A stretch of DNA of 63,098 nt, filler included, from Octopus bimaculoides (Eukaryota): assembly GCF_001194135.2 (NCBI RefSeq). It is 7 parts of 5 records of this genome, joined end to end, with 100 filler letters (N's around TTAATTAATTAA, not from the genome) between each part and the next. Parts side by side here need not be neighbours in the genome. Positions count along the whole stretch, not along the records: positions 38,001 to 59,391 come from NC_068993.1; 6 more parts are not named here. The stretch is one strand, 5' to 3'. The position numbers and the translations under genes were made by a program. Position 1 is the stretch's first letter, and each line of letters opens with the position of its first letter. Shown here piece by piece: positions 38,001 to 58,707 of this stretch. A model generated the notes under the pieces. It did no database searches. It had not been told where the DNA came from and worked only from the letters and a program-made list of their open reading frames with translations.

Positions 38001-38520
38001 CGGCGTTGTTGTTTCTCCCGTAGACGGCGTTGTTGTTTCTCCTGTAGACGGCGTTGTTGTCTCTCCTGTAGACGGCGTTGTTGTTTCTCCTGTAGACGGC
38101 GTTGTTGTCTCTTCTGTAGACGGCGTTGTTGTTTCTCCTGTAGACGGCGTTGTTGTCTCTCCTGTAGACGGCGTTGTCGACTCTTCTATCGGCGTTGTTG
38201 TTGTTTCTCCTGTAGACGGCGTTGTTGTCGACTCTTCTATCGGCGTTGTTGTTGTTTCTCCAGTAGACGGCGTTGTTGACTCTTCTGTCGGCGTTGTTGT
38301 TTCTCCCGTAGACGGCGTTGTTGTTTCTCCAGTAGACGGCGTTGTTGTTTCTCCAGTAGACGGCGTTGTTGTTTCTCCCGTAGACGGCGTTGTTGTCTTT
38401 CCTGTAGACGGCGTCGTTGTCTCTTGTGTCGACGGTGTTGTCGACTCTGGTGTCGACGGTGTTGTTGACCCTGTTGCAGACGGCGTTGTCGACTCAGGTG
38501 TTGATGGCATTGTTGACTCA
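38001..38520 (-). repeat. Coding minisatellite, 24-bp unit (GACGGCGTTGTTGTTTCTCCTGTA on plus) with 27-bp variants
   Basis: Seen directly; all unit lengths are multiples of 3. Confidence 0.95.
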
Positions 38521-38764
38521 GGTATCGATGGTGCTGGAGACTCTGATGTTGGCGGTGCTGTTGACTCTTCTGTAGAGAGTGTTGTTGTTTGGCCTGTTGC
38601 CTCCGTTACTGGCGTTGTTGTTTGCTCTGTAGAAGTTGTCGCTGTTTGCGTTGAAGCTGATGTTGTTGGCGTTTGTGGAGAGGACGTTGTGGAATGTGAA
38701 ACGAGCGGTGTTGTCCATTCAATAAAGCGTGTAGTTGTAGTAGTTGTTGTAGGTTTAATCTTCT
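38001..38764 (-). CDS. PAN-PAN-mucin gene, exon 5: Thr/Ser/Pro/Glu-rich mucin tract; 3' end lost in the gap
   Basis: Acceptor ttttgtctttttcttctttag|AG at 38764 (phase 1). Open frame KIKPTTTTTTTRFIEWTTP... then many 24-bp TPSTGETT units until the Ns at 38000. Confidence 0.88.
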
Positions 38765-39235
38765 CTAAAGAAGAAAAAGACAAAATATATAATGTAGGTA
38801 TTATTTGAAGGCTGTTATTTTCATAACTTAAGACAATATTGACATAAAAGCGATGAACGGAATTTAAGCAAGAACTGGTTTGACGAGTCTGAGATATGAT
38901 ATCCGTTCCCAATGGAAAACGATTTCGCCTCACATTACACTAAGAGCAATATTCACTCATTAAAGGGGAAAATATCATGAATGTCCATTTGTTCAAGGTC
39001 TATTCGTGTGAAAATTAAAATAATCTAGGAGAAAATTAAATAATGGATATTTAATTGAAACATGGTAAATGTGTTCGTTTTGAATTGTTTGAACTTTGGT
39101 TGATTTGCTTTAAATTTGAATTTATTTCCTGATCTGAGTGAGTTCTACAATTGTGTGTTTCGTTATGGAAGTCAAAAACTCAGTTTCCAAGCATCGTTTG
39201 TTTATTTCGAATAACAAGTGTTATTATTTCCCAGG

Positions 39236-39287
<52 letters not shown>

Positions 39288-39663
39288 CAAAAGTAAGCAA
39301 ACGTTGCCCATACAAAAAGTCAACATTTAAAATTCGTATGCGTGTTTTGCGTGAAAATGAACGAGATGTGGAATCCATTGTTGTTGCAGATGGTGTTAAG
39401 AAGGCAATAGTCTATACTTGGGTAGTCGGGGACCAAGCATCACATTTGTATCGTGGAAGTCTTAGTAACGAAGTGAAGAATAATGAGTTAGATATTTAAT
39501 TGTTGAATGAATGCCCTCAATTAATATTGAACAATTTTTGCGATCATTTACATTTACTGCGTGGTTAATATGGTCCCAGAGTGGGTTCGAAAACTATAAA
39601 TAAGTGATTCTGATGGAAGACTGTTTACATCGAAGCCTGTTTTCGTTTAGAAATGCTTTATAA

Positions 39664-39876
39664 TATTTTCTACTCTAGGCACAAGGCTCGAAATTTTGGG
39701 GGAGGGAGTCAGTCGATTACATCGACCCTAGTGCGCAGCTGGTACTTAATTTATTGACCCCGAAAGGATGAAAGGCAAAGTCGACCTCGGCGGAATTTGA
39801 ACTCAGAATGTAAAGACAGACGAAATACTGCTAAGAATTTCGCCCAACGTGCTAACGATTCTACCAGCTCGCCGCC
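39664..39876 (-). mobile_element. SINE family B, full length, with a 17-bp target-site duplication, in intron 4 of the PAN gene
   Basis: TTAGAAATGCTTTATAA is present at both 39647-39663 and 39877-39893. Confidence 0.92.
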
Positions 39877-40179
39877 TTAGAAATGCTTTATAAAACGATT
39901 TAAAATCCCAACAAATTTCCTTTCTCGCTTGTAAAATTAAAATTTCTAGTTTCACGGCCGTCTGTAGCAGACGTAGATCGATCCTCGTAGCTGACTTTGG
40001 TCACTTCTTTCTGTGTAAGGTTTATTTTTTACTTGTATATAAACCATGGTTTATAGCTATAGTTGCCCTCGAGTAACTTCGTACTAGCACTTACGTTCGT
40101 ATTTCTTACGATCTAAAAACATATCTATGTATAATAAAACAATCAGATCTTGCCTAAATGTCTATTTGTCATCAATAGC

Positions 40180-40245
<66 letters not shown>

Positions 40246-40266
40246 GACAAAAGAAAAAAAACTCAC

Positions 40267-40494
40267 GGTTGAGTTCATAATAATTCCATCCTTTGTTTTT
40301 CACTTTAAGTTTGTTAGTCTGGTGTGTGGCAGAAGACAAAGAGCATTTTCGTTTCTGAGAGTTAAATTCGACAGAACGGCATTTTGGATGTTTCTGACAT
40401 TCGCGTTTGCAGTTCCTGAGGTTAGTTCGTTTGAATGTATAAAAACTCTTCTTATTCTTTAAGCGGGCTCCCAGCAATGTATTTATGCCATTTA
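40267..40494 (-). CDS. PAN-PAN-mucin gene, exon 4: PAN/apple domain 2
   Basis: CKRECQKHPKCRSVEFNSQKRKCSL..WNYYE is the C-x3-C-x5-C-x-S-x-x-F...C-x-L PAN pattern. Donor C|GTGAGT at 40266. The most likely acceptor (aaaaag|TA at 40494) gives a 228-nt phase 1-1 exon; the acceptor is less certain. Confidence 0.85.
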
Positions 40495-40697
40495 CTTTTT
40501 GTTTGAAAAACAAAGACAATAAAGAATTAAAGCAAGGATATAATATTATTACTCACTCACTCACTCACACCCCATCACTCATTCACTCGCTCACTGATTG
40601 ACTGACTGACTCACTCACTCACTCACTCACTCACTCAATGAATGAATGAATCAATCAATTAATCAAACAAGCTATCAATTGAATGTTTGTTACTCAC

Positions 40698-40931
40698 AGT
40701 TCTCTAGTTGGTAGAAAGTAGTATCTTTTTCCCTCTGCAGAACTTTGGTAGAAGCATCATCGCGAAAGAGACGACATTGTTTCTTATTTCTTGTGAACTC
40801 AAAAGATCTGCAGTTTCTCATTTTACGACACTTTGAAGCACAGACTTGAGGATTTCTGCCACGCATTGTTTTCAATGGTTGACCATTAATCGAAGCACGT
40901 TTGACCTCTATAAACCAGTCGGTTGGAACTT
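40698..40931 (-). CDS. PAN-PAN-mucin gene, exon 3: PAN/apple domain 1
   Basis: CASKCRKMRNCRSFEFTRNKKQCRLF..FYQ. Acceptor ttgtag|AA at 40931, donor T|GTGAGT at 40697; 234 nt, phase 1-1. Confidence 0.9.
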
Positions 40932-41069
40932 CTACAATATACATAACATACACATGTACATACATACATAGATACAAACGTACATACATACATACATACA
41001 TACATACATACATACATACATACATACAAGTGTGTGTCAGTGGTTAGAGCGTCGGCTCACAATCATGCT

Positions 41070-41245
41070 TGGGCACCGCCTTTTAGTCAAGCAAATCGAC
41101 CCCGGGACTTATTCTTTGTAAGCCTAGGGCTTATCCTATCGGCAACTTTTGCCGAACCGCTAAGTGACGGGGACATAAACACACCGGCATCGGTTGTCAA
41201 TCGATAATGGGGCACAAGCACAGACACACAAACACACACACACAC
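41070..41245 (-). mobile_element. SINE family A 3' half, fused to a short plus-strand family-C head (41036-41067)
   Basis: GCACCGCCTTTTAGTCAAGCAAATCGACCCCGGGACTTATTC.. is the reverse complement of the family A tail, preceded by GTCAGTGGTTAGAGCGTCGGCTCACAATCATG. Confidence 0.75.
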
Positions 41246-41247
41246 AT

Positions 41248-41306
<59 letters not shown>

Positions 41307-41513
41307 CTCTCTCTTTCTCTATATGTAACTGTCGTCAACAGAAAACTTTCGAAGGTATATTTGTTGAAAAACAACAAAACTACCGATAAGACGACATCTT
41401 TTCGTACTGAAGCAGTTAATGACAAAGGATTATACGAGAAGTAAGTACAAAATATCAAACGGGAAAAGAAAAAAAAAAAAGAAACATTAAAACGAAAATG
41501 AAAAGAAACTCAC

Positions 41514-41555
41514 CCCTATCTTCGGTCATATGTGTATGGACATATTCGGCGGCAA
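41514..41555 (-). CDS. PAN-PAN-mucin gene, exon 2 (42-nt micro-exon completing the signal peptide)
   Basis: Strong acceptor gttttatcttcgttttctgccctag| and donor G|GTGAGT. Phase 1-1, reading (V)[13 protein letters not shown](E), joins exon 1 and exon 3 in frame. Confidence 0.75.
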
Positions 41556-41605
41556 CTAGGGCAGAAAACGAAGATAAAACTTTAAAACAAAGAAACAGAA
41601 AGGGC

Positions 41606-41667
<62 letters not shown>

Positions 41668-41698
41668 GTCTGTCTGTCTGTCTGTCAGTCTGTCTGTA

Positions 41699-41729
<31 letters not shown>

Positions 41730-42861
41730 ATGTACTGATTTACCTACGTCATTACTCGGAATTTCATATCTGGATTCTTGCAGAATCTGTTAGATAAGTA
41801 ACGAACTGTTAGATAAGTATTTCACTTGCAATGAACCGCTGCACATTTATTAATTGAAAAATTCGACAACATCTCTGACAGCTGTTTCGATTCCAGACCT
41901 TTATAAATTAATTACCATAATTAAAACTATTTAAAAGTCGAATATCATCAGAGTTGGCTAAAGATATACAAAAACAGAAAAATGGGGAAGAAGTGTAAAA
42001 AAATAAGCAATAAGAATGTAAAGTAAAGGTGTAAATATGTTCATGGCGAGCGCGTATGCGCGCATGTCCATACATACACATGCGCGCACGCACACCCACA
42101 TATACGTACCTGTGTGCATATGCTCGTCCACACTCGCTTGAAACACACACATGCGCACCCACACATTCGCCAAAAGTAATTCATACATACACGCTCAAGC
42201 GCTCGCGCGCACACACACACGAAAAGGTTCATATACACGTCTATATACGCATATACTCGCATGCACGCACGCACATTTCTGTTTTTTGCCTTTAGCCCTG
42301 ATAATATATAGATATCCTGATAACATATAGATAATATATAGATAATATATAGATACATAAGTGTGTGAGTTTAGTTGTGTTTGAGTGTGTGTGTATGTGT
42401 ATGTGTGTGTGTGTATGTGTTTCTAGATGTTAGTATAACTGTGTAAAATGGGGAAAATTATAAAATTCTTCGACAACTGCATCTAAATATACATAAATTC
42501 TATTGCGATCACATAACAAAAGGAAAGAGCGAGAGGCAGATATCGCTGTTTGCGGTAACACCCTGAGAAAGATTAGACCTGATGTCAGGCATCGTAGTAT
42601 TTCAGAGTTCAACGTCAGGAAACACGAGAATTATTAAGTGCAGGCATACTTATGGACGGATGGTGTAGTTGCTTACTTATGATGTGGTGAAAATTGTATG
42701 ATTCTAAATATATTAACGATGTTTGTTGTTTAAGAAAAAAGACCGATTTAACATGTAGGAGAGGTGGCGCTGGCGGTGGTTGTGGTAGTTGTGTATTATT
42801 GCAAAACTAAAATGAATGTGTTATTAAAGATAATAGTTCTCCTTTTCCCTACCAAATATGC

Positions 42862-43159
42862 AACACGAGCACTCCACAGACACGTGTACCCTTAACATAG
42901 TTCTCAGGGATATTCAGCGTGACACAGTGTGACAAGGCTGACCCTTTGAATTACAGGCACAACAGAAATAGGAAGTAAGAGTAAGAGAAAGTTGTGGTGA
43001 AAGAGTAGAGCAGGGTTCGCCACCATCCCCTGCCGGAGCCTCGTGGAGCTTTTTAGGTGTTTTCGCTCAATAAACACTCACAACGCCCCGGTCTGGGAAT
43101 CGAAACCGCGATCCTATGGCCGCGAGTCCGCTGCCCTAACCACTGGGCCATTGCGCCTC

Positions 43160-43160
<1 letters not shown>
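42862..43160 (-). mobile_element. tRNA-derived SINE (family D head with family C tail) in intron 1 of the PAN gene
   Basis: Reverse complement GAGGCGCAATGGCCCAGTGGTTAGGGCAGCGGACTCGCGGCC..GGTTTCGATTCCC. The tail is shared with 61743-61958. Confidence 0.85.
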
Positions 43161-43200
<40 letters not shown>

Positions 43201-43395
43201 AATAATAATAATAATAATGATGATGATGATAATGATGATGATGATTACGATGATAGTAACAACAATAATGACAATAATAGTGATGAGGATTATGATAAGA
43301 ATTAGGCGGAGGAAGATGAAAAGGGCAATGATGATGATGATGATGATGATAGCGATGACGATGATGGTGATGAAGATGATGATGATGATGATAAT
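43160..43395. repeat. Compound (CAA)/(TAA)/(GAT)n microsatellite; (CAT)n also at 43640-43800
   Basis: Seen directly; these flank exon 1 on both sides. Confidence 0.9.
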
Positions 43396-43413
43396 CACGA
43401 TGTCAGAGCTCAC

Positions 43414-43450
43414 CGACGAAGGTAAGAGTCGCGAGGATTTGCTTCAACAT
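43414..43450 (-). CDS. PAN-PAN-mucin gene, exon 1 coding part (MLKQILATLTFV, start of signal peptide)
   Basis: aagATG with A at -3, a basic residue then a hydrophobic stretch, and phase-1 donor G|GTGAGC at 43413. A TATA box lies about 50 nt upstream. Confidence 0.72.
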
Positions 43451-43467
43451 CTTGGCAAGCAGGACCT

Positions 43468-43508
43468 AAAATGGCGACGAATCTACATCTTGGCGCTCTG
43501 TTTATATA
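43468..43508 (-). promoter_or_regulatory. Core promoter of the PAN gene: TATA box (TATATAAA, 43508-43501) and a YY1-like CGCCATTTT near the expected TSS
   Basis: Motifs are seen directly, with TATA-to-TSS spacing of about 25-30 nt. Function is inferred from position relative to exon 1. Confidence 0.6.
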
Positions 43509-43720
43509 GAGTCACCTTTGGCAAAAGGATCTGTTTGTTCCCACGATTCTACCCCCACCCCGCCATCCTCCACCCATTTGCCGTGAAAAGAAGGTAGAGA
43601 TCCTCTTCATTCACTACCACTAAGAACACCACCGTGTCAATCATCATCATCATCGTCGTCGCCGCCGTCGTCGTCATCATCATCATCATCATCATCATCA
43701 TCACCACCATTATCACCATC

Positions 43721-43778
<58 letters not shown>

Positions 43779-43848
43779 CCGCCACTACAGCTATCATCAT
43801 TATCTTCCTCAAATGTTAATAGANNNNNNNNNNCCGCCTTAAAAAAAC

Positions 43849-43889
<41 letters not shown>

Positions 43890-44377
43890 TAAAAATGATG
43901 ATGATGATGATGATGATGATGATAATGATGATGATGATGATGGTTTCTTTAGTTTACCACAGGGGCATGGATGAAGGGAACAGCCCAAGGACGGTTTACC
44001 ATTTATGAAGAAAACACATGTCGATAATATTTAGTTGTTACCGTGTTTTAGTTCAAATAAAGTTAATCTAGGATTATGAAATAGGTGTCCATAAATATCT
44101 TCAAATATTTTCTAGACTTGCTATTCTTTATCTAAGCCACTGTAAATAGATACATACACGTGCATACACGCATACACACATGCGTACATAAATACATGCA
44201 GACATACAGATATAAATACATACATACACACACGCACACCCATATCATTTGATGTACAAAGTATAAAGATATCAACTATAAATAGTTTCTTGCTTTGGAG
44301 ACGCGGACCTTTGCCTTATGTCTTTAAGCAATTTCTAGGTTCAGGGCACATTATAAAAATCTGACCAGATATATATA

Positions 44378-44543
44378 GGCATAGGAGTGGCTGTGTGGTA
44401 AGTAGCTTGCTTACGAATCACATGGTTCTGGGTTCAGTCCTACTGCGTAGCACCTTGGGCAAGTGTCTTCTACTATAGCCTCGGGCCGAGCAAAACCTTG
44501 TGAGTGGATTTGGTAGACGGAAGCCGAAAAAAGAAGCCCGTCG

Positions 44544-44545
<2 letters not shown>
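44378..44545 (+). mobile_element. SINE family A 5' half
   Basis: High similarity to the 2233 copy; it ends in (TA)n. Confidence 0.85.
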
Positions 44546-44575
<30 letters not shown>

Positions 44576-45364
44576 GTAGGTAAGTAGAGTTCGAATAACC
44601 GTCTAANNNNNNNNNNNNNNNNNNNNNNNNNNNNNNNNNNNNNNNNNNNNNNNNNNNNNNNNNNNNNNNNNNNNNNNNNNNNNNNNNNNNNNNNNNNNNN
44701 NNNNNNNNNNNNNNNNNNNNNNNNNNNNNNNNNNNNNNNNNNNNNNNNNNNNNNNNNNNNNNNNNNNNNNNNNNNNNNNNNNNNNNNNNNNNNNNNNNNN
44801 NNNNNNNNNNNNNNNNNNNNNNNNNNNNNNNNNNNNNNNNNNNNNNNNNNNNNNNNNNNNNNNNNNNNNNNNNNNNNNNNNNNNNNNNNNNNNNNTATAT
44901 ACAATTGCAGCGTGGAAGGTGTTTATAAGCCATTTAAAATAATACACAAAAACCGTTAGATTGACTTCAACATTTAAATTTGATTTGTCAAAATAATTTC
45001 GTCGCTTAGAGACGCGACCTGTTCACTGACAAAATTCTGTGCTGCATACTTTTCATAAGGAAGGCGGCCTTTTTTTTTTTGTAGAAACCAAATTAGTCAT
45101 TTGGGATGTTATTTCTTAGCTTTCACGGACAGTAAAAACTCCGATATGAACGATATAAGTTATAAACTGGTATAGAATTTCCAAAGTAATATATTGTTTG
45201 GGACTATAAAAAATATTTAAAAAAAAAACGAAAACTGAGTGAACATTAAATAAAAATAGCATAAAAAGTATTTTGATCTAAGCCGATCAGTTACGGCTGC
45301 TTTCTGGCGTTAATAACCTCCGGTGTAAGGTCTTAAACATGCTGGGAATTAGGATGATATATTA

Positions 45365-47024: not shown

Positions 47025-47290
47025 TTAGGCTGGCGGATTTCCAAGATACAGCTTCCCCCAGATCATCACAGATTCTCCTCCATATTTAACAGCTGGAAGA
47101 AGGTAGTCTGGGTCAAATGCTTCTTTTGGCTGTCCCCACCCGTATATTCGGCCAGTGGTCGGAAATAAGGTAAAGGATGACTCATCCGAGAAAATAACAT
47201 TCTTCCACTGCTCTAGGGACCAACTCGGTAGGTTTTTACTCCACTCTAAACGCTTTGCAACACACACACATCCGGTTACATTTTTATCAG
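47025..47290 (-). mobile_element. Tc1-type transposase fragment (first catalytic D region)
   Basis: KRLEWSKNLPSWSLEQWKNVIFSDESSFTLFPTTGRIYGWGQPKEAFDPDYLLPAVKYGGESVMIWG contains the Tc1 'W..V+FSDES.F' and 'K+GG.SVM+WG' motifs. Confidence 0.88.
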
Positions 47291-47329
47291 AAGACATATA
47301 ATCATTGAGAGGAATTAAGAGATCCGGTA

Positions 47330-47905
47330 GTTGTTGGCAGCATTGGATCCACTGCATGCGATGGATGAAGTGTTGTATGTATCTTTCCAATTCCATAGGG
47401 TCGCACATGCGAAACACATTCCTCATCATTCTCTAATTTTTTACAGGTGTCCAAAAACAGTTGTGCGAGATGTTTGGAGTTCTGATGAAAGTTTTTAAAC
47501 CTTTGTTCTCGGATTTTGTTCAACCAAAGCTTTTTATCCACCATGCCGAATAACTGATTTTAGCCTGCTCCTTGGTTTATTTTGAAGGCTATCATCTCTT
47601 GAAAGAGAGCTTTGGAATCATCCCTGAACAGTTCTGATGTCAACAAAACCATTACCAAAGGACCGCTTGATATTCCGTAGAGCTACTGCGGCAGAGTGAC
47701 TCAGTTTGTACTCTTACGAGAAAATCACTCAACATAGTTCGCTTGTTGTCATTTTCATAAGGTCTGTGGGTACGAATTTTGTCTACCAATATTGTTGGGA
47801 AAGAAAAAGAGTCAAGATTAAATGCAAAGTATACATAATTGAGTTTTTAAATGACTGAAATTACAAGTAATTTAGAATGCAACATTTCATGAGAAAAAAA
47901 CCTAA
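47330..47905 (-). mobile_element. mariner-type 5' half (TIR-like TA|TTAGGTT plus HTH N-terminus), degenerate
   Basis: Reverse complement about 47750-47560 reads EYKLSHSAAVALRNIKRSFGNGFVDIRTVQG*FQ..DDSLQNKPRSR, resembling the mariner N-terminus 'EFKLGHSA.EA.RNI..AFG...V..RTVQRWF..F'. Confidence 0.6.
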
Positions 47906-48887: not shown

Positions 48888-51455
48888 ATATTTTTGGACT
48901 AATGGGAATATGTTGGTTAGTGTGTTAAGTAGAACACTGGCACGGTTTGTACCACCTGGTGTCATCTGTATTTGGGGTATATTACCGTTGCATCTACTTC
49001 AGGAATTCCCCAGTGTTANNNNNNNNNNNNNNNNNNNNNNNNNNNNNNNNNNNNNNNNNNNNNNNNNNNNNNNNNNNNNNNNNNNNNNNNNNNNNNNNNN
49101 NNNNNNNNNNNNNNNNNNNNNNNNNNNNNNNNNNNNNNNNNNNNNNNNNNNNNNNNNNNNNNNNNNNNNNNNNNNNNNNNNNNNNNNNNNNNNNNNNNNN
49201 NNNNNNNNNNNNNNNNNNNNNNNNNNNNNNNNNNNNNNNNNNNNNNNNNNNNNNNNNNNNNNNNNNNNNNNNNNNNNNNNNNNNNNNNNNNNNNNNNNNN
49301 NNNNNNNNNNNNNNNNNNNNNNNNNNNNNNNNNNNNNNNNNNNNNNNNNNNNNNNNNNNNNNNNNNNNNNNNNNNNNNNNNNNNNNNNNNNNNNNNNNNN
49401 NNNNNNNNNNNNNNNNNNNNNNNNNNNNNNNNNNNNNNNNNNNNNNNNNNNNNNNNNNNNNNNNNNNNNNNNNNNNNNNNNNNNNNNNNNNNNNNNNNNN
49501 NNNNNNNNNNNNNNNNNNNNNNNNNNNNNNNNNNNNCTCCCCCTCTCCCCCCTCTCTCAACCTCCTTCTTTTCTATCTGCTGCCAATATATGACCTGTGA
49601 AAGGTCACGCGTATCTGCGACTTAATTGTCAGGTCGTGTCTCCATCAATCGCTTTTTTTCAAGCTCTAATGGCTAAGTTGTTTCTGAGAAAGCCTTGAGA
49701 CGTCAGAAGAAATCCGATATTCCAACTCCTATGTTGACTTACTCCCATTCTTCCCTGTTCCCTCTGCCGCTCTCCCTGTTTCTCACGTCTGAGTAATAGT
49801 GTCCTTGTTTCCATGCCGACCCCAGACCACCTGTAATATAGGCACCACATTCCTAAATGGCCAAGCTGGTTTGCGAAAGTGTAGGAAAAGCTACCTCTTT
49901 GTTTTAAGCGTTGGTGACTCGAAGTTTTAGACCTGTTTGTTCTGGGAACGTCCTTTGTCAAGGATGTAGTGCACCTTTATTAAGGATTTTCGACTGCAAA
50001 TTCTTCCTAACACAGGCGTTCTGTGTACACTTTTGATGTAGTTTGTATCATCAGTCATAATGATACAAACTACATCAGAAATGCACACAGAACGTATGTG
50101 TTTAGGGGTAGTCATCTTGCATTTTACCGCCTCTGTTGTCTGCAGATTTCGTATCAACTCTCTCTTGTCCTTCAAAGCAGGAGAGAACTTGTACAGAATT
50201 AATTGAAATTTATTAGTTTCTTCGACACAATGTCTGAAATTTGGAGCAAGAAAACACCAATTATATCTTTATTTCATGTACCTGGTACTTATTTTATCGA
50301 CCACAGAAGAATGCAAGTCAAAGTCGATGCCTACGATATTTGAACTAAGAACGTAAAGTACTGCGTTAGATCAAGCAGGACATTCTTTCGATACTCATCC
50401 AGCGCCTTTAATAGTAATATATGTTATGAATGTAATAATTTATCAAAGCCATTATACATGTACATGTACTTGCGGTAGGTAAACAAAATTCATAGAGCTA
50501 TGAGTGATTGTTAATTTCAGTAAACAAAGGAAAAAGTTGAAAAACAAAGCAAAAAAAAAAAAAGAATAAAAGAACGAAAACAAAAGAAATAAATTGACTG
50601 TTACACAATTTATGCAAAAAAACTTTATCGCTTACGCAAGCATTTGATTCAGAATATTATTTTATGCAAGGTTGAACTCAAAACACACGCCAAGGTAGAC
50701 ATTTATGCGGAGACACGACCAGCTAAAGCGCACCATTACAAATCCTTTACTACCATGTTATATAAAAAGAAAACAAAACAAATAATGCAATAATACAAAG
50801 TCGTTTGTGTGTTGTACTTGTGAAAAGGACATGATGGTCGCGGGTAGAACACTTTTGATCATAAATGTGCTTGATCAACGACTCAGTCTATCAGGGGCTC
50901 TCACTCTCTGTCTGTCTGTCTGTCTCTTTCTCGGACTGTCTTTGCACAGGGTACATCCGGACTCCCGCCTTCGCCGCGAACAAGAATTAATCTTCTTTCT
51001 TTACTTCTTTGCGCCACATGGGCTCAACTTACCTCCTCTCTTCATTTGATACCAACCCCACACCACTCCATGTATATGTACATTAATCATCTACAATCAA
51101 GAAATGTTCTCGCTTTAATATTTCACAATTTATATTTCACATTTCAATATCCATTGTAATCTTGAATATTCATTAATTTGACATTTCTCAGTTGTCATAA
51201 AACTTACGATTATGCAAACGGTTTTACGTTGACATGTACAAATTCTTATCTCACATTCCTTATAGTTCATCTCCCTCCTTCTTCTCTGCTTAACTCCATT
51301 TTCCCGCAAGAAAAATTAATAGAAAAAAAGAATTCTCCTCACCCAAGGTAACAAAGAACTTACTAGATCTATTAACTAAAATATATATTATTAAAAAAAA
51401 AAATAATTAAACTGATTAGAACCGTCAGTGAAGTCATTCTTTTTCTTTTTTCAAA

Positions 51456-52032
51456 GGCGCAGGAGTGGCTGTGTGGTAAGTAGCTTGCTTACCAACCATA
51501 TNNNNNNNNNNNNNNNNNNNNNNNNNNNNNNNNNNNNNNNNNNNNNNNNNNNNNNNNNNNNNNNNNNNNNNNNNNNNNNNNNNNNNNNNNNNNNNNNNNN
51601 NNNNNNNNNNNNNNNNNNNNNNNNNNNNNNNNNNATATATATATATATATATAGTTGGAATTTACAAAATCAAAAGACGAAGACAGGTATGTAAACAACA
51701 AACAGGTGCATTAGTTTAACGCTCGGGAAGGTGAGAAAGTCTTTTACGTTTCGAGCCTACGCTCTTCGACAGAAAGGAACACGAAGAAATAAATCGTGAA
51801 AGAATAAAAAAGAAAGCTTTAGTAGCCAGCGGTCAATCTGTCTGTGTTTGTCCCCCAGCCATCGCTTGACAACAAATGTTGGTGTGTCTACGTCCCCGTA
51901 ACTTAACGGTTCGGCAAAAGAGGCCGATAGAATAAGCACTAGGCTTACAAAGAATAAGTTCTGGGGTCGATTTGTTCGACTAAAGGCGGTGCTCCAGCAT
52001 GGCCACAGTCAAATGACTGAAACAAATAAAAG
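51456..52032 (+). mobile_element. SINE family A interrupted in its central (TA)n by an unrelated repeat (about 51655-51815)
   Basis: Head at 51456-51498, then gap, (TA)n and insert, then the family A 3' half at 51835-52032. Confidence 0.75.
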
Positions 52033-52068
52033 AATATATATATATTATATACACACACATACACACAC

Positions 52069-52262
52069 TTGTTTGAGTCATTTGACTACAGCCATGCTGG
52101 AGCACCGCCTTCAGTCGAAGAAATCGAACCCAGGACTTATTCTTTGTAGACCTGACTCTTATACTATCGATCTGTTTTGTCGAACCGCTAAGCTTCGGCG
52201 TTCGTTGTCAACCGATGGTGGGGGCCAAAAATCGATTGCCAACCGATGGTGGGGTACAAACA
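52069..52262 (-). mobile_element. SINE family A 3' half, inverted relative to the preceding copy
   Basis: GTTTGAGTCATTTGACTACAGCCATGCTGGAGCACCGCC is the reverse complement of 51985-52023. Confidence 0.85.
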
Positions 52263-53606: not shown

Positions 53607-53798
53607 AGGCGGCGAGCTGGGCGAAATGCTTACCGGTATTTCGTCTGTCTTTACGTTCTGAGTTCAAATTACGCCTAGGTCGATTTTGCCTTTCATCCTT
53701 TCGGAGTCGGTAAATTAAGTACCAGTTGTGTACCGGGGTTGATCTAATCGACTGGCCCCTCCCCAAAAATGTCGGGCCTTGTGCCTTGAGTAGAAAAG
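53607..53798 (+). mobile_element. SINE family B with a probable 12-bp TSD
   Basis: AATATCTAATTA (53595-53606) versus AATATTTAATTA (53799-53810). Confidence 0.85.
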
Positions 53799-54719
53799 AA
53801 TATTTAATTAAATTACAACAGAAGAAGGCAGCTCGAGGCCGTCATAGCCGGCATTCCTGTTATGTTCAACACAACACAGATCAGCCCATCTCCTAAATCG
53901 GAGGCATCGTGTTCATGTTACGAAGCATCATTTTGCGAAATCGTTAGAGCGTCGAACAAAATGCTTTATTCTATTTACTTACAGCGCCTTACATGCCGAT
54001 TTCAAATCCCGTTCAGACTCGTTTTGCTTCTCTTCGCTCTGGAGTCGATAACAAATCGGTTAAATACTAGATTGATTTTATCGATTACCTTATCCCATCC
54101 GGTTAATGTTTACAATATTACCTTGAAACGAAATATAAAAAATAGTGCAACGGATGTAAAAGAAATGTGTAGGAAACAAATATGAAAACAAAAATGCGCG
54201 GAAAGCAACGGGGTGGGGAGGGAGAGGACTTCGGAAAATTCACAAGATCCGAATTTTTCCCTCATAACTTTTAGGAATTTCTTTTTTTTAAATAAAATTT
54301 TATATAAATACCTTTCAAACGGCATAGATTACGATTATGAAGAAAATTGTGAGTAAAATCTTTTCGGAAGGGGTGGGGAGAGGACTTCGGAAAATTCACA
54401 AGATCCGATTTTTTCTCTCGTAACTTTAAGGAAAATGGATATCTTTTAATGAAATTGTATATACCTTTCAAGGGGCATGCATTACGTATGCCTAATGTGC
54501 TGAAAACCCCTTATTTTTGTTCGGAAAAAGAGATGGGGGAGAAACCGGAATTATTAGAAAATGCTTTTCTTTTTCGATGAATGAATTACGGTGGCCTAAT
54601 ATGCCACAATCAGCCATCTGGGATTAATATATCCAATGATGTTTAAGAGGTATGTAAAAGATATTTTGTTTTAATGTTCGTTTAGTCGTTCCGCAATGCG
54701 CCTAGATGTTTCCGCTATG

Positions 54720-55337: not shown

Positions 55338-55600
55338 GGAAACTGAAAGAAGCCCGTCGTATATATATATATATGTATGTATGTATGTGTTTGTGTGTCT
55401 GTGTTTGTCCCCCCAACATCGCTTGACAACCGATGCTGGTGTGTTTATGTCCCCGTAACTTTGCGGTTCGGCAAAAGAGACCGATAGAATAAGTACTAGG
55501 CTTCTAAAGAATAAGTCCTGGGGTCGATTTGCTCGACTAAAGGCGGTGCTCCAGCATGGCCGCAGTTAAAAGACTGAAACAAGTAAAAGAGTAAAAGAGT
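55338..55600 (+). mobile_element. SINE family A (5' part in gap)
   Basis: Near-consensus tail ending AGTAAAAGAGTAAAAGAGT. Confidence 0.88.
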
Positions 55601-55842
55601 ATATATATAGTAATTATCAAATTACTACTAATTGTAATTATTAAAATACTGCTAATTATAATTATAGTACTAATTTTGATGTCGTTTAACTACTTAACTG
55701 CCTGCCTGTTAACTGACAGCCTTATAAACCTATTTTAGTTGGCAGCATTCCGTCATTACATCTTCACATCCTGTTTGTGTGGGAGGAGGAGAACATATGT
55801 CTCCATTTATTTCCTCTTTCCTCAAGACTTAATTCTCGTCAA

Positions 55843-57118: not shown

Positions 57119-57538
57119 ATGACACAAACAATCAATTTATCTAGAATCTCTCTTCTCGTTTCAGAGACAACACATACAGAGACTATTGAAACGTTGCTGA
57201 AGCAATGTGGCGGTTTCGGTCCCTATCAGAAGAAAATCGTTTCTTTACTTGTCTTGTTTTTCCTCCTCAGTCCTCTACAAACCATGAGTATGGCATTTAT
57301 CGGGGCCAAAGTTCCTTTTTCTTGTACTCCTCCGAATTTCAATTCTTCACTCGTGCCAAGAAATTTTAGTATAAAAACCTTCAAAAATTTGCTGTCACCG
57401 GAAGATGATAGATGTTCTGTTTATGAAATTAACATGGATGGGGATTATTACCAAATACCAACAAAGAATTCAACAAGAATGCAATGTAGCCAAAACAGAG
57501 AATTTTATACTGAAGATATATCAACGGTTGTATCGGAG
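57119..57538 (+). CDS. SLC22 / organic cation transporter-like protein, first recognisable coding exon (TM1 plus large extracellular loop)
   Basis: ETLLKQCGGFGPYQKK..TM1..FIGAKVPFSC..DDRCSVY..MQC..ISTVVSE, with N-glycosylation sequons NSS, NFS and NST; donor GAG|GTAAGT at 57539. The true start may be the ATG at 57119 or an upstream exon spliced at 57165. Confidence 0.9.
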
Positions 57539-58707
57539 GTAAGTGTTGAATTTTTGTCTGTAATATCAAACTAAATATTAGATTGAAACTATCACAAGAT
57601 TTTTACAAGACCACATGGTCATTGGGTTCCTTTAAAGTAACCATTCTGTTGAGTGGATTTAGAGTAGCATTCCAGTCCGAGGATAACCGATGAATCGCGA
57701 AATTTATGTTCTTTAAGTAAAAGATGAAGAATTTCAGGAAAGAGTCGAGCAATTTAATTGTATACAATACCTGTGTTATCAAATTCGCAAAATAATGACA
57801 TATTTTCAAAATTTTATCCCGGGACACAAAAATATATTTCAAAAATAAAATAAAATAAAATAAAATAAATTAATAATAAAATTTTCACTCATTTGAAAAT
57901 AATTTTACTATTAAAAAATTACTTGTAATTAATACCAGTAATTAATAGCGACACTTAGCAGATGATTCTGCCTTTTTTTTTTTACTCATAATTTCATGTC
58001 CATGTTTTGTTTCAAAAGGTTTTGGAAAATTATAGAAATCGTTTTATAAGCAAAAATTCTCAGAAGTAAACTGCTTCGTTCTTTGGAACTGCAAAAAAAA
58101 AAAAAAAAAAAAAAGAAAAAAAAAAGAGAAATCTAAAGTTTGCCTTTTTTTAATAATTGCAACGGTTTTCGAATTTACAATCTTTGAAGCTGAATCCCAT
58201 GCTAACAAGAAAACAACAGCTGACCATATTTTATAAACGGTCAATTCAATATGTTGCCATTCCTCATAATTATAATCCTGTTAGAGGAATAAATTAAAAG
58301 ATTTCACATGCTGATTTTTATAATTTCCTTTCTATGTTAACTGTGAGAGGATAAAAATTGTGGTACGATTCAAGATTTTAGCCGCTACTTCTGGAAATTA
58401 CAGCTCAAGTAATGAGGTTTGGAAATTCTATCCAATACCTATTGCTAACATTTTATCAAGTCCAGGACTGGAACATCCAATCAAAAGCAAAATATAAGAT
58501 TAAACACCGCTAGACTTTTTATATGATTCTCTTACACCACTACGTTCCTCTCAGTGATAATTTCTAACATAAGCAAAATATCACAAGTTTTATAGAGGAA
58601 AAAATGCATTAAACTGGTCTCTTCAATATTAATGAAAAACACAATTTAGAAAATAAACAACTTTGTTAATTTGTTTTCTTCCTAAAGGATTTCTCTTTCT
58701 TTCTCAG

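Follow-up and report, generated by a model that had tools for sequence, protein, structure and literature searches.

A candidate Octopus bimaculoides gene for a secreted di-PAN protein with a mucin-type repeat exon, related to an octopod PAN-WSC gene

PAN modules and Pro/Thr/Ser-rich (PTS) repeats are common parts of animal extracellular proteins, and the gene considered here would join the two while leaving existing ideas standing. It lies on the minus strand of a 63,098-nt stretch of Octopus bimaculoides DNA (hereafter the window; RefSeq assembly GCF_001194135.2), within the 21-kb piece at positions 38,001 to 59,391 that comes from NC_068993.1. This region probably represents the 5′ part, from promoter to mucin exon, of a gene encoding a secreted di-PAN/PTS glycoprotein, a diverged member of a set of octopod paralogues.

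The described proteins closest to it differ in the part compared. The N-terminal PAN domains of plasminogen and HGF have the same fold and the same four-Cys core as the two modules predicted here, but these proteins carry kringle and protease domains and the identity is 14-22%. The N domain of HGF is basic, binds heparin and has been solved in complex with it, apicomplexan PAN lectins bind galactose, and the third disulfide of the blood-coagulation apple domains is an extra rather than the rule. Caenorhabditis elegans LET-653, a secreted protein, is composed of PAN, PAN and ZP, with a mucin-like region serving as the linker between ZP-N and ZP-C, and its PAN domains tether it to the luminal matrix (PMC4970718). 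Two N-terminal PAN modules and a PTS-rich region are thus found in both proteins, but the PTS tract of the octopus protein follows PAN2 directly without a ZP-N, whereas the mucin-like part of LET-653 lies inside the ZP domain. A preliminary description of this DNA, in which PAN-PAN-mucin was taken as the front half of LET-653, was imprecise on this point, and the analogy with LET-653 and other ZP proteins is a weak one. As to the mucin domain, a process termed mucinization has been described in which lineage-specific orphan mucins arise from secreted non-mucin proteins by gain of exonic repeats (Pajic et al. 2022, PMC9417175), the cases described being mammalian proline-rich proteins. The closest relative by sequence is another gene of O. 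bimaculoides, LOC106869731.

Exon structure and the closest paralogue

Five exons on the minus strand, joined by script, gave 1305 nt or 435 stop-free codons. Their positions in the window are as follows.

43414..43450, minus strand: exon 1, coding part, 37 nt, encoding MLKQILATLTFV plus the first base of the next codon
41514..41555, minus strand: exon 2, 42 nt, encoding the end of the predicted signal peptide (likely cleavage between VAA and EY) and a short linker; assigned by hydropathy
40698..40931, minus strand: exon 3, 234 nt, encoding PAN module 1; assigned by Pfam, AlphaFold2 and Foldseek
40267..40494, minus strand: exon 4, 228 nt, encoding PAN module 2; assigned by Pfam, AlphaFold2 and Foldseek
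38001..38764, minus strand: exon 5, 764 nt in view and cut by the edge of the piece, encoding a Thr/Ser/Pro/Glu-rich PTS (mucin-type) domain of at least 255 aa

The start codon has a purine at -3 and an in-frame TAG 15 nt upstream, and of the predicted signal peptide exon 1 encodes the n-region together with most of the hydrophobic core. All four donors read GTGAG, all acceptors consist of a pyrimidine tract followed by AG, and introns 1 to 4, with lengths of 1858, 582, 203 and 1502 nt, are each in phase 1. The junctions proposed in the preliminary description (43414/41555, 41514/40931, 40698/40494 and 40267/38764) were exact in coordinates, in frame and bounded by canonical signals, and its view that a signal peptide, two PAN modules and a mucin tract are joined from five exons into one spliced gene, not visible as a single open reading frame (ORF), was borne out. 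The 21-kb piece ends inside the exon-5 repeat at 38001, the continuation of the gene lying outside it, and a tblastn search with the PAN exons found no further PAN exon elsewhere in the piece.

The best single di-PAN unit in the searches was that of LOC106869731 (XP_014771072.2, UniProt A0A0L8HMG8), with 85.1 bits by phmmer over query residues 20-154; by BLASTP, its PAN pair shared 33% identity with that of the window gene over 138 aa (E 7e-25). The UniProt record is named 'WSC domain-containing protein' and the protein is uncharacterized; LOC118765861 is the counterpart in O. sinensis. Its order is signal peptide, PAN, PAN, a 52-aa Thr-rich linker and three WSC domains (Pfam PAN_1 and WSC). 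Five of its exons, which when spliced encode the first 232 residues of the protein, measure 37, 36, 228, 234 and 162 nt and are all in phase 1, as compared with 37, 42, 234, 228 and at least 764 nt in the window gene, with the same phases. Both genes have a 37-nt first coding exon, one exon for each PAN module and a Thr-rich exon, in the same order. The domain boundaries also match (FYQLEN/LNG.. versus YYQRI/FPG.., and YYELN/QKIKPTTT versus YYQIDR/AMITTT, the slash marking the boundary), and the fifth exons of both genes begin with a Thr run (QKIKPTTTTTTT versus AMITTTLSTT), exon 5 of the window gene corresponding, by its place in the gene and its phase, to the homologous 162-nt Thr-rich exon in LOC106869731. 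This shared exon plan in an annotated gene therefore supports all four junctions of the window gene, those of the small signal-peptide exons included, and strengthens the model originally drawn.

The two genes are nevertheless well diverged. In LOC106869731 the linker consists of 52 non-repetitive residues followed by three WSC domains, whereas its counterpart in the window gene is an expanded acidic PTS array; the PAN pair of the former is near neutral (+4, isoelectric point (pI) 8.6) and carries two N-glycan sequons, whereas that of the latter has a net charge of +25 and no sequon; and the introns of the former are 4 to 37 times longer. The WSC exons of LOC106869731 are situated about 1 to 41 kb beyond its Thr-rich exon, so that the C-terminal part of the window gene could easily fall outside the 21-kb piece.

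Two loci were compared with the window, namely the LOC106869731 locus (L001; GCA_001194135.2, CM046613.1) and the locus of its O. sinensis counterpart (L002). Neither the window locus nor an orthologous PAN exon was found in them, the only matches being copies of a short interspersed nuclear element (SINE)-like repeat described below. In both loci (L001 98745-101061, minus strand; L002 46827-54209, plus strand), the PAN-WSC paralogue is followed by tiny single-WSC models of 79 and 77 aa, which run off the loci and may belong to a further, fragmentarily annotated WSC-bearing gene.

PAN modules and the octopod di-PAN family

Pfam PAN_1 (PF00024) matched the whole predicted protein with 85.1 bits, exon 3 alone with 52.8 bits (E 3.5e-14) and exon 4 alone with 47.6 bits (E 1.5e-12). 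With a gathering score of 21.4 bits, both Cys exons pass the hidden Markov model of the family, in keeping with the preliminary assignment. The two modules share 31% identity, and each possesses four core Cys residues (C57, C61, C67 and C79; C132, C136, C142 and C154) arranged as C-x3-C-x5-C-x(11-12)-C, with two predicted disulfides each. These Cys columns are invariant or nearly so across alignments with relatives, in which the core F/Y/W positions are also kept. AlphaFold2 models, made from small alignments with relatives, had predicted local distance difference test values of 93.5 for PAN1 and 88.2 for PAN2. In Foldseek searches of the PDB, the N-terminal PAN domain of plasminogen ranked first for both PAN1 (template modelling (TM) score 0.91, root-mean-square deviation (rmsd) 1.4) and PAN2 (TM 0.84, rmsd 1.6), followed by the HGF N domain (TM about 0.8), the Sarcocystis galactose lectin SML-2, the apple domains of factor XI/prekallikrein and EtMIC5. 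The HGF matches include the NK1/NK2-heparin complexes 1GMN, 1GMO, 3MKP and 3SP8. As modelled, both Cys exons encode the PAN fold of the plasminogen/HGF type.

The preliminary description had noted that each module has four Cys and lacks the outer pair of classical apple domains. The count stood, and the third outer disulfide of the six-Cys apple domains of factor XI/prekallikrein type is indeed absent, but its reading as a loss did not: exactly eight Cys per pair were found in 54 of the 85 related di-PAN units as well. Because the best fold matches are the PAN domains of plasminogen and HGF, with the factor XI/prekallikrein apple domains below them, and because the pattern is common among relatives, four Cys is an ordinary arrangement. 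Interpretation as a degenerate apple domain was thus rejected in favor of a normal plasminogen/HGF-type PAN core.

The earlier charge counts were exact, with 18 K/R versus 9 D/E in PAN1 (pI 9.96) and 19 K/R versus 3 D/E in PAN2 (pI 10.35). Over its 154 aa, the PAN pair has a net charge of +25 and a pI of 10.26, the highest of the 86 di-PAN units compared; in the relatives, the net charge averages +3.3 (standard deviation 7.6, maximum +22), and a pI of at least 9.5 was found in 11 of 85. The likeness to the HGF N domain is one of fold, four-Cys core and basic charge.

A further peculiarity concerns N-glycosylation. No N-x-S/T sequon occurs in the 435 aa of the predicted protein, versus 1 to 6 in each of the octopod di-PAN relatives counted (23/23). 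In these relatives, sequons recur as NVT before the first Cys, NVS before the fifth and SNAT or SNVT after the eighth, the corresponding positions in the window protein being GRNPQ, RTNLRN and SSATH.

Relatives were sought by a word-indexed protein search of 5.8 billion clusters and by an exhaustive HMMER search of 1.84 billion cluster representatives, the latter with the PAN1 exon alone as query. The exhaustive search returned 184 matches at E <= 1e-3, none with more than 40% identity. The top matches were octopod multi-PAN proteins, whose scores are sums over many PAN repeats. They include a 2643-aa protein of O. sinensis with 20 PAN stretches (XP_036361601.1), an O. bimaculoides protein combining PAN with Sushi (XP_014770598.1), CAI9728792.1 of O. 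vulgaris, and a protein of Argonauta hians with a signal peptide and four PAN modules (GAB1601772.1). Another octopod member is a zonadhesin-like protein of A. hians with the order signal peptide, PAN, PAN, VWD, C8, TIL and VWA (GAB1605714.1). In other relatives the cassette is fused to an ADAMTS protease or stands with no other module; among the nearest relatives, then, the accompanying modules are WSC, VWD-C8-TIL-VWA, Sushi and ADAMTS.

A two-module unit is common to these proteins, PAN-A ending in YYQ and PAN-B ending in W.xY.xN. The window gene shares with them the PAN-A/PAN-B pair, the four Cys in each module and the motifs FxKV...YYQ and W.xY, although identity is 27-30%, and in these proteins the cassette is repeated many times or joined to other modules. 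In none of the octopod multi-PAN proteins inspected was a long PTS repeat observed, unlike in the window gene. A rough neighbor-joining tree, without bootstrap, gave the window pair a basal position in the octopod clade, LOC106869731 being nearest by distance. On sequence grounds, the window gene belongs to an octopod family built on the di-PAN cassette.

The family itself is large in octopods: PAN-A and PAN-B alternate in the cassette, one protein has as many as 20 PAN modules, and the modules to which the cassette is fused are Sushi, WSC, VWD-C8-TIL-VWA and ADAMTS. Literature searches found no paper on this cassette family, and nothing specific on octopus PAN, apple, WSC or mucin proteins or on the paralogue accessions. 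The present gene draws attention to an octopod-expanded family that is largely uncharacterized.

Mucin-type tract, proposed origin and alternatives

At the hydrophobic N-terminus, 9-residue hydropathy reaches 2.6, VAA followed by EY fits the -3/-1 rule, and octopod relatives begin with comparable signal-like peptides. A cleavable signal peptide of about 15 residues, split across exons 1 and 2, is predicted, and the product is likely secreted.

The 255 aa encoded by the visible part of exon 5 comprise 110 T, 37 S, 34 P, 30 E, no D and 4 K/R, that is, 58% S+T and 13% P, with 52-63 S+T and at least 12 P in every 100-aa window. The preliminary description had called this tract acidic, and with 30 E versus 4 K/R, a pI of 4.05 and a net charge of -26 it is so. 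By the usage of PMC1552070 and PMC9417175, in which a PTS domain is a long Pro/Thr/Ser-rich domain, exon 5 encodes such a domain, and it also has the tandem repeats of the mucin class. About 90 non-repetitive residues (KIKPTTTTTTTRFIEW...) come first, followed by an array of STGETTTP type:

38001..38489, minus strand: tandem array of 24-nt units, 20.4 copies in view, 82% matches (Tandem Repeats Finder)

The unit lengths in the array are 21, 24 or 27 nt only, all multiples of three, and when 12 core STGETTTP units are compared, codon position 3 accounts for 13 of their 15 differences; these two properties suggest that the array is under coding constraint in the proposed frame. Openness of the array was rejected as coding evidence, all three sense frames being open, and the two properties were used instead. 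In the visible 435 aa, Pfam detected no VWD/C8/TIL or SEA domain of the canonical gel-forming or membrane mucins, and no ZP domain, which was also absent from the octopod di-PAN relatives inspected.

These observations suggest that, in a diverged di-PAN paralogue, a 24-nt tandem repeat may have enlarged the linker exon into a mucin domain, i.e., mucinization, and that the PAN pair would have turned extremely cationic. If the basic, heparin-binding N domain of HGF and the PAN lectins are a guide, the pair would then act as a binding head whose ligand is probably a polyanionic or sulfated glycan, or else another component of a matrix or of microbes. The acidic PTS tract, if O-glycosylated, would form an extended hydrated spacer or brush, and the protein would be a component of mucus or of an apical extracellular matrix. 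A 162-nt exon in the paralogue versus one of at least 764 nt here fits repeat gain within one exon; unlike in the mammalian cases, the precursor would be of PAN-WSC type, and the direction of change is read from two paralogues only. For the missing C-terminal part, our best guess is WSC domains, by paralogy with LOC106869731. Self-assembly, a role in mucus, egg coat or cuticle, and tissue-specific expression, all suggested in the preliminary description, stay conjectural.

If expressed, the gene would add an unannotated secreted glycoprotein to the extracellular and mucus repertoire of cephalopods and would provide an invertebrate case of a mucin domain derived from repeat expansion in the linker exon of a lectin-like protein. 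Spliced repeat-bearing genes of such type escape ORF tracks and, apparently, current gene sets.

Several points weigh against this interpretation. With the spliced 205-aa N-terminus as query, the word-indexed search returned no match, and neither search revealed an annotated or transcript-derived protein for the window gene. The signal peptide and O-glycosylation were assessed by eye and composition only, openness of the array is by itself no proof of coding, and the ligand idea draws on net charge and on analogy with solved PAN domains that share 14-22% identity with the modules. As the tail of the protein lies outside the piece, the soluble, anchored and polymerising classes are all possible. 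The exon-5 peptide gave 8000 low-complexity candidates in the word-indexed search, of which none was significant, and look-ups of the exact products of the window ORFs found nothing on record. The collection searched contains the proteomes of O. bimaculoides, O. sinensis, O. vulgaris and A. hians, and the gene is apparently missing from current octopus gene sets.

Of the alternatives, a multivalent lectin rather than a mucin survives best and is a possibility of some standing, though short of probable. WSC exons would then follow outside the piece, with the PTS tract acting mainly as a long spacer that separates the PAN head from a WSC tail. LOC106869731 has exactly PAN, PAN, a Thr-rich exon and three WSC, its WSC exons are far enough downstream to lie outside a piece of this size, and its Thr-rich exon, being in phase 1-1, suits a gene that continues. 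However, identity with this paralogue is only 33%, other relatives join the cassette to VWD-C8-TIL-VWA, Sushi, ADAMTS or nothing, and the piece contains no WSC sequence and does not overlap the paralogue locus.

It is unlikely that the locus is a silent or decaying di-PAN duplicate, unexpressed or expressed only in a stage not sampled. Such a copy would agree with the lack of a matching protein in the annotated octopod proteomes or among the transcript-derived proteins of the collection searched, and with the lack of an orthologue in the O. sinensis locus L002. However, the five exons are free of stops and frameshifts, every splice signal is canonical, the PAN modules retain their eight Cys and the core F/Y/W positions, the repeat indels are multiples of three with differences mostly at third codon positions, and a TATA/Inr-like promoter precedes the gene. 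Moreover, mucin genes are known to be under-represented in genome assemblies as well as in gene predictions (PMC1552070).

Slightly more doubtful still is self-assembly by charge blocks, in which one molecule, through its +25 PAN head, would attach to the Glu-rich and probably also sulfated or sialylated brush of another to produce an electrostatically cross-linked gel or adhesive. The contrast between the most cationic of the 86 di-PAN units and -26 over the visible tract is in its favor, but composition is its only basis, and the related units with a pI of at least 9.5 have no acidic tract attached. An extended form of this idea, also a long shot, would make the gene a lineage-specific octopod charge-block mucin descended, through expansion of an exonic repeat, from a lectin-type PAN-WSC gene. 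Its polycationic head would bind the glycosylated polyanionic brush on adjacent molecules, or else sulfated glycans and microbial surfaces, to yield a reversible electrostatic gel or adhesive, and all octopus annotations to date would have overlooked it.

Least probable, and very unlikely, is an apical-matrix protein similar to LET-653 or NompA with a ZP domain beyond the edge, since the co-occurrence of PAN, mucin-like region and ZP in LET-653 (PMC4970718) and a ZP-C domain in 1 of 90 scanned PAN relatives are offset by the position of the PTS tract and by the relatives inspected, as given above. The earlier remark that no ZP exon was found downstream carries no weight here, because the piece ends in the repeat and the tail of the paralogue lies about 1-41 kb on. 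The reading preferred is thus that of a secreted di-PAN/PTS glycoprotein gene of the octopod family.

Promoter region, repeats and other features of the piece

A possible TATA box precedes exon 1, as the preliminary description had reported:

43501..43508, minus strand: candidate TATA box TATATAAA, 58 nt upstream of the ATG

An Inr-like CCATTTT is located 36 nt downstream of it, with its A at 43472. In the AT-rich DNA of the piece, TATAAA occurs about once per 0.95 kb of strand and TATATAAA about once per 5.6 kb. The position is plausible for a promoter but suggestive only, and the box was rejected as strong evidence of regulated expression, the motif being frequent in such DNA. The decamer GCCAAGATGT occurs twice on the minus strand, at 43447-43456 and 43482-43491, 35 nt apart. 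The downstream copy contains the start codon, and the upstream one a one-codon ATG-TAG ORF (43488-43483, minus strand) that is probably upstream of the transcription start. Trinucleotide microsatellites flank the promoter and exon 1 at 43640-43778, 43849-43942, 43281-43392 and 43160-43199; those upstream are of the types (GAT)46, (AAT)16 and (ATG)16, and (ATC)n and (ACA)13 stand where intron 1 begins. An assembly gap of 10 N is present at 43824-43833, with six larger N gaps elsewhere in the piece.

Two interspersed repeats lie within introns of the gene:

42867..43159, strand not assigned: SINE-like interspersed repeat in intron 1, non-coding, 87.7% identical over 293 nt to the copy in L001
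39666..39879, strand not assigned: SINE-like interspersed repeat in intron 4, 88-89% identical to the copies in L001 and L002

Further copies were observed at 53616-53810, 44375-44581, 55478-55601 and 51908-52030, the six in the piece being 82-92% identical to copies in the two loci. Neither ARAGORN nor Rfam yielded a tRNA in the piece, and ARAGORN called none in the SINE-like copies. Matches to Rfam microRNA families were all sub-threshold (among them 51947-52146, 40953-41025 and 50006-50105; MIR841 scored 79.6 versus 200 bits). Those that could be placed, at 40953-41025, 42038-42105 and 43729-43948, fall on microsatellite or simple-repeat sequence. MicroRNA identity was rejected and the matches, far below the gathering scores, were ascribed to chance.

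A 151-aa ORF at 57119-57574 (plus strand), for which Pfam and the word-indexed protein search gave no match, aligned through its residues 25-76 with residues 5-55 of SLC22A6/OAT1, which include the first transmembrane helix, at an E value of only 0.34. Possibly an SLC22-type transporter gene starts here, with this ORF as its first coding exon, and continues past the edge of the piece. A remnant of a Tc1/mariner-type transposase was located at 47025-47429 (minus strand), with a further ORF at 47302-47544 (minus strand). Residues 74-130 matched the catalytic domain of Sleeping Beauty SB100X (5CR4; E 9.5e-9), the ORF being short and probably decayed.

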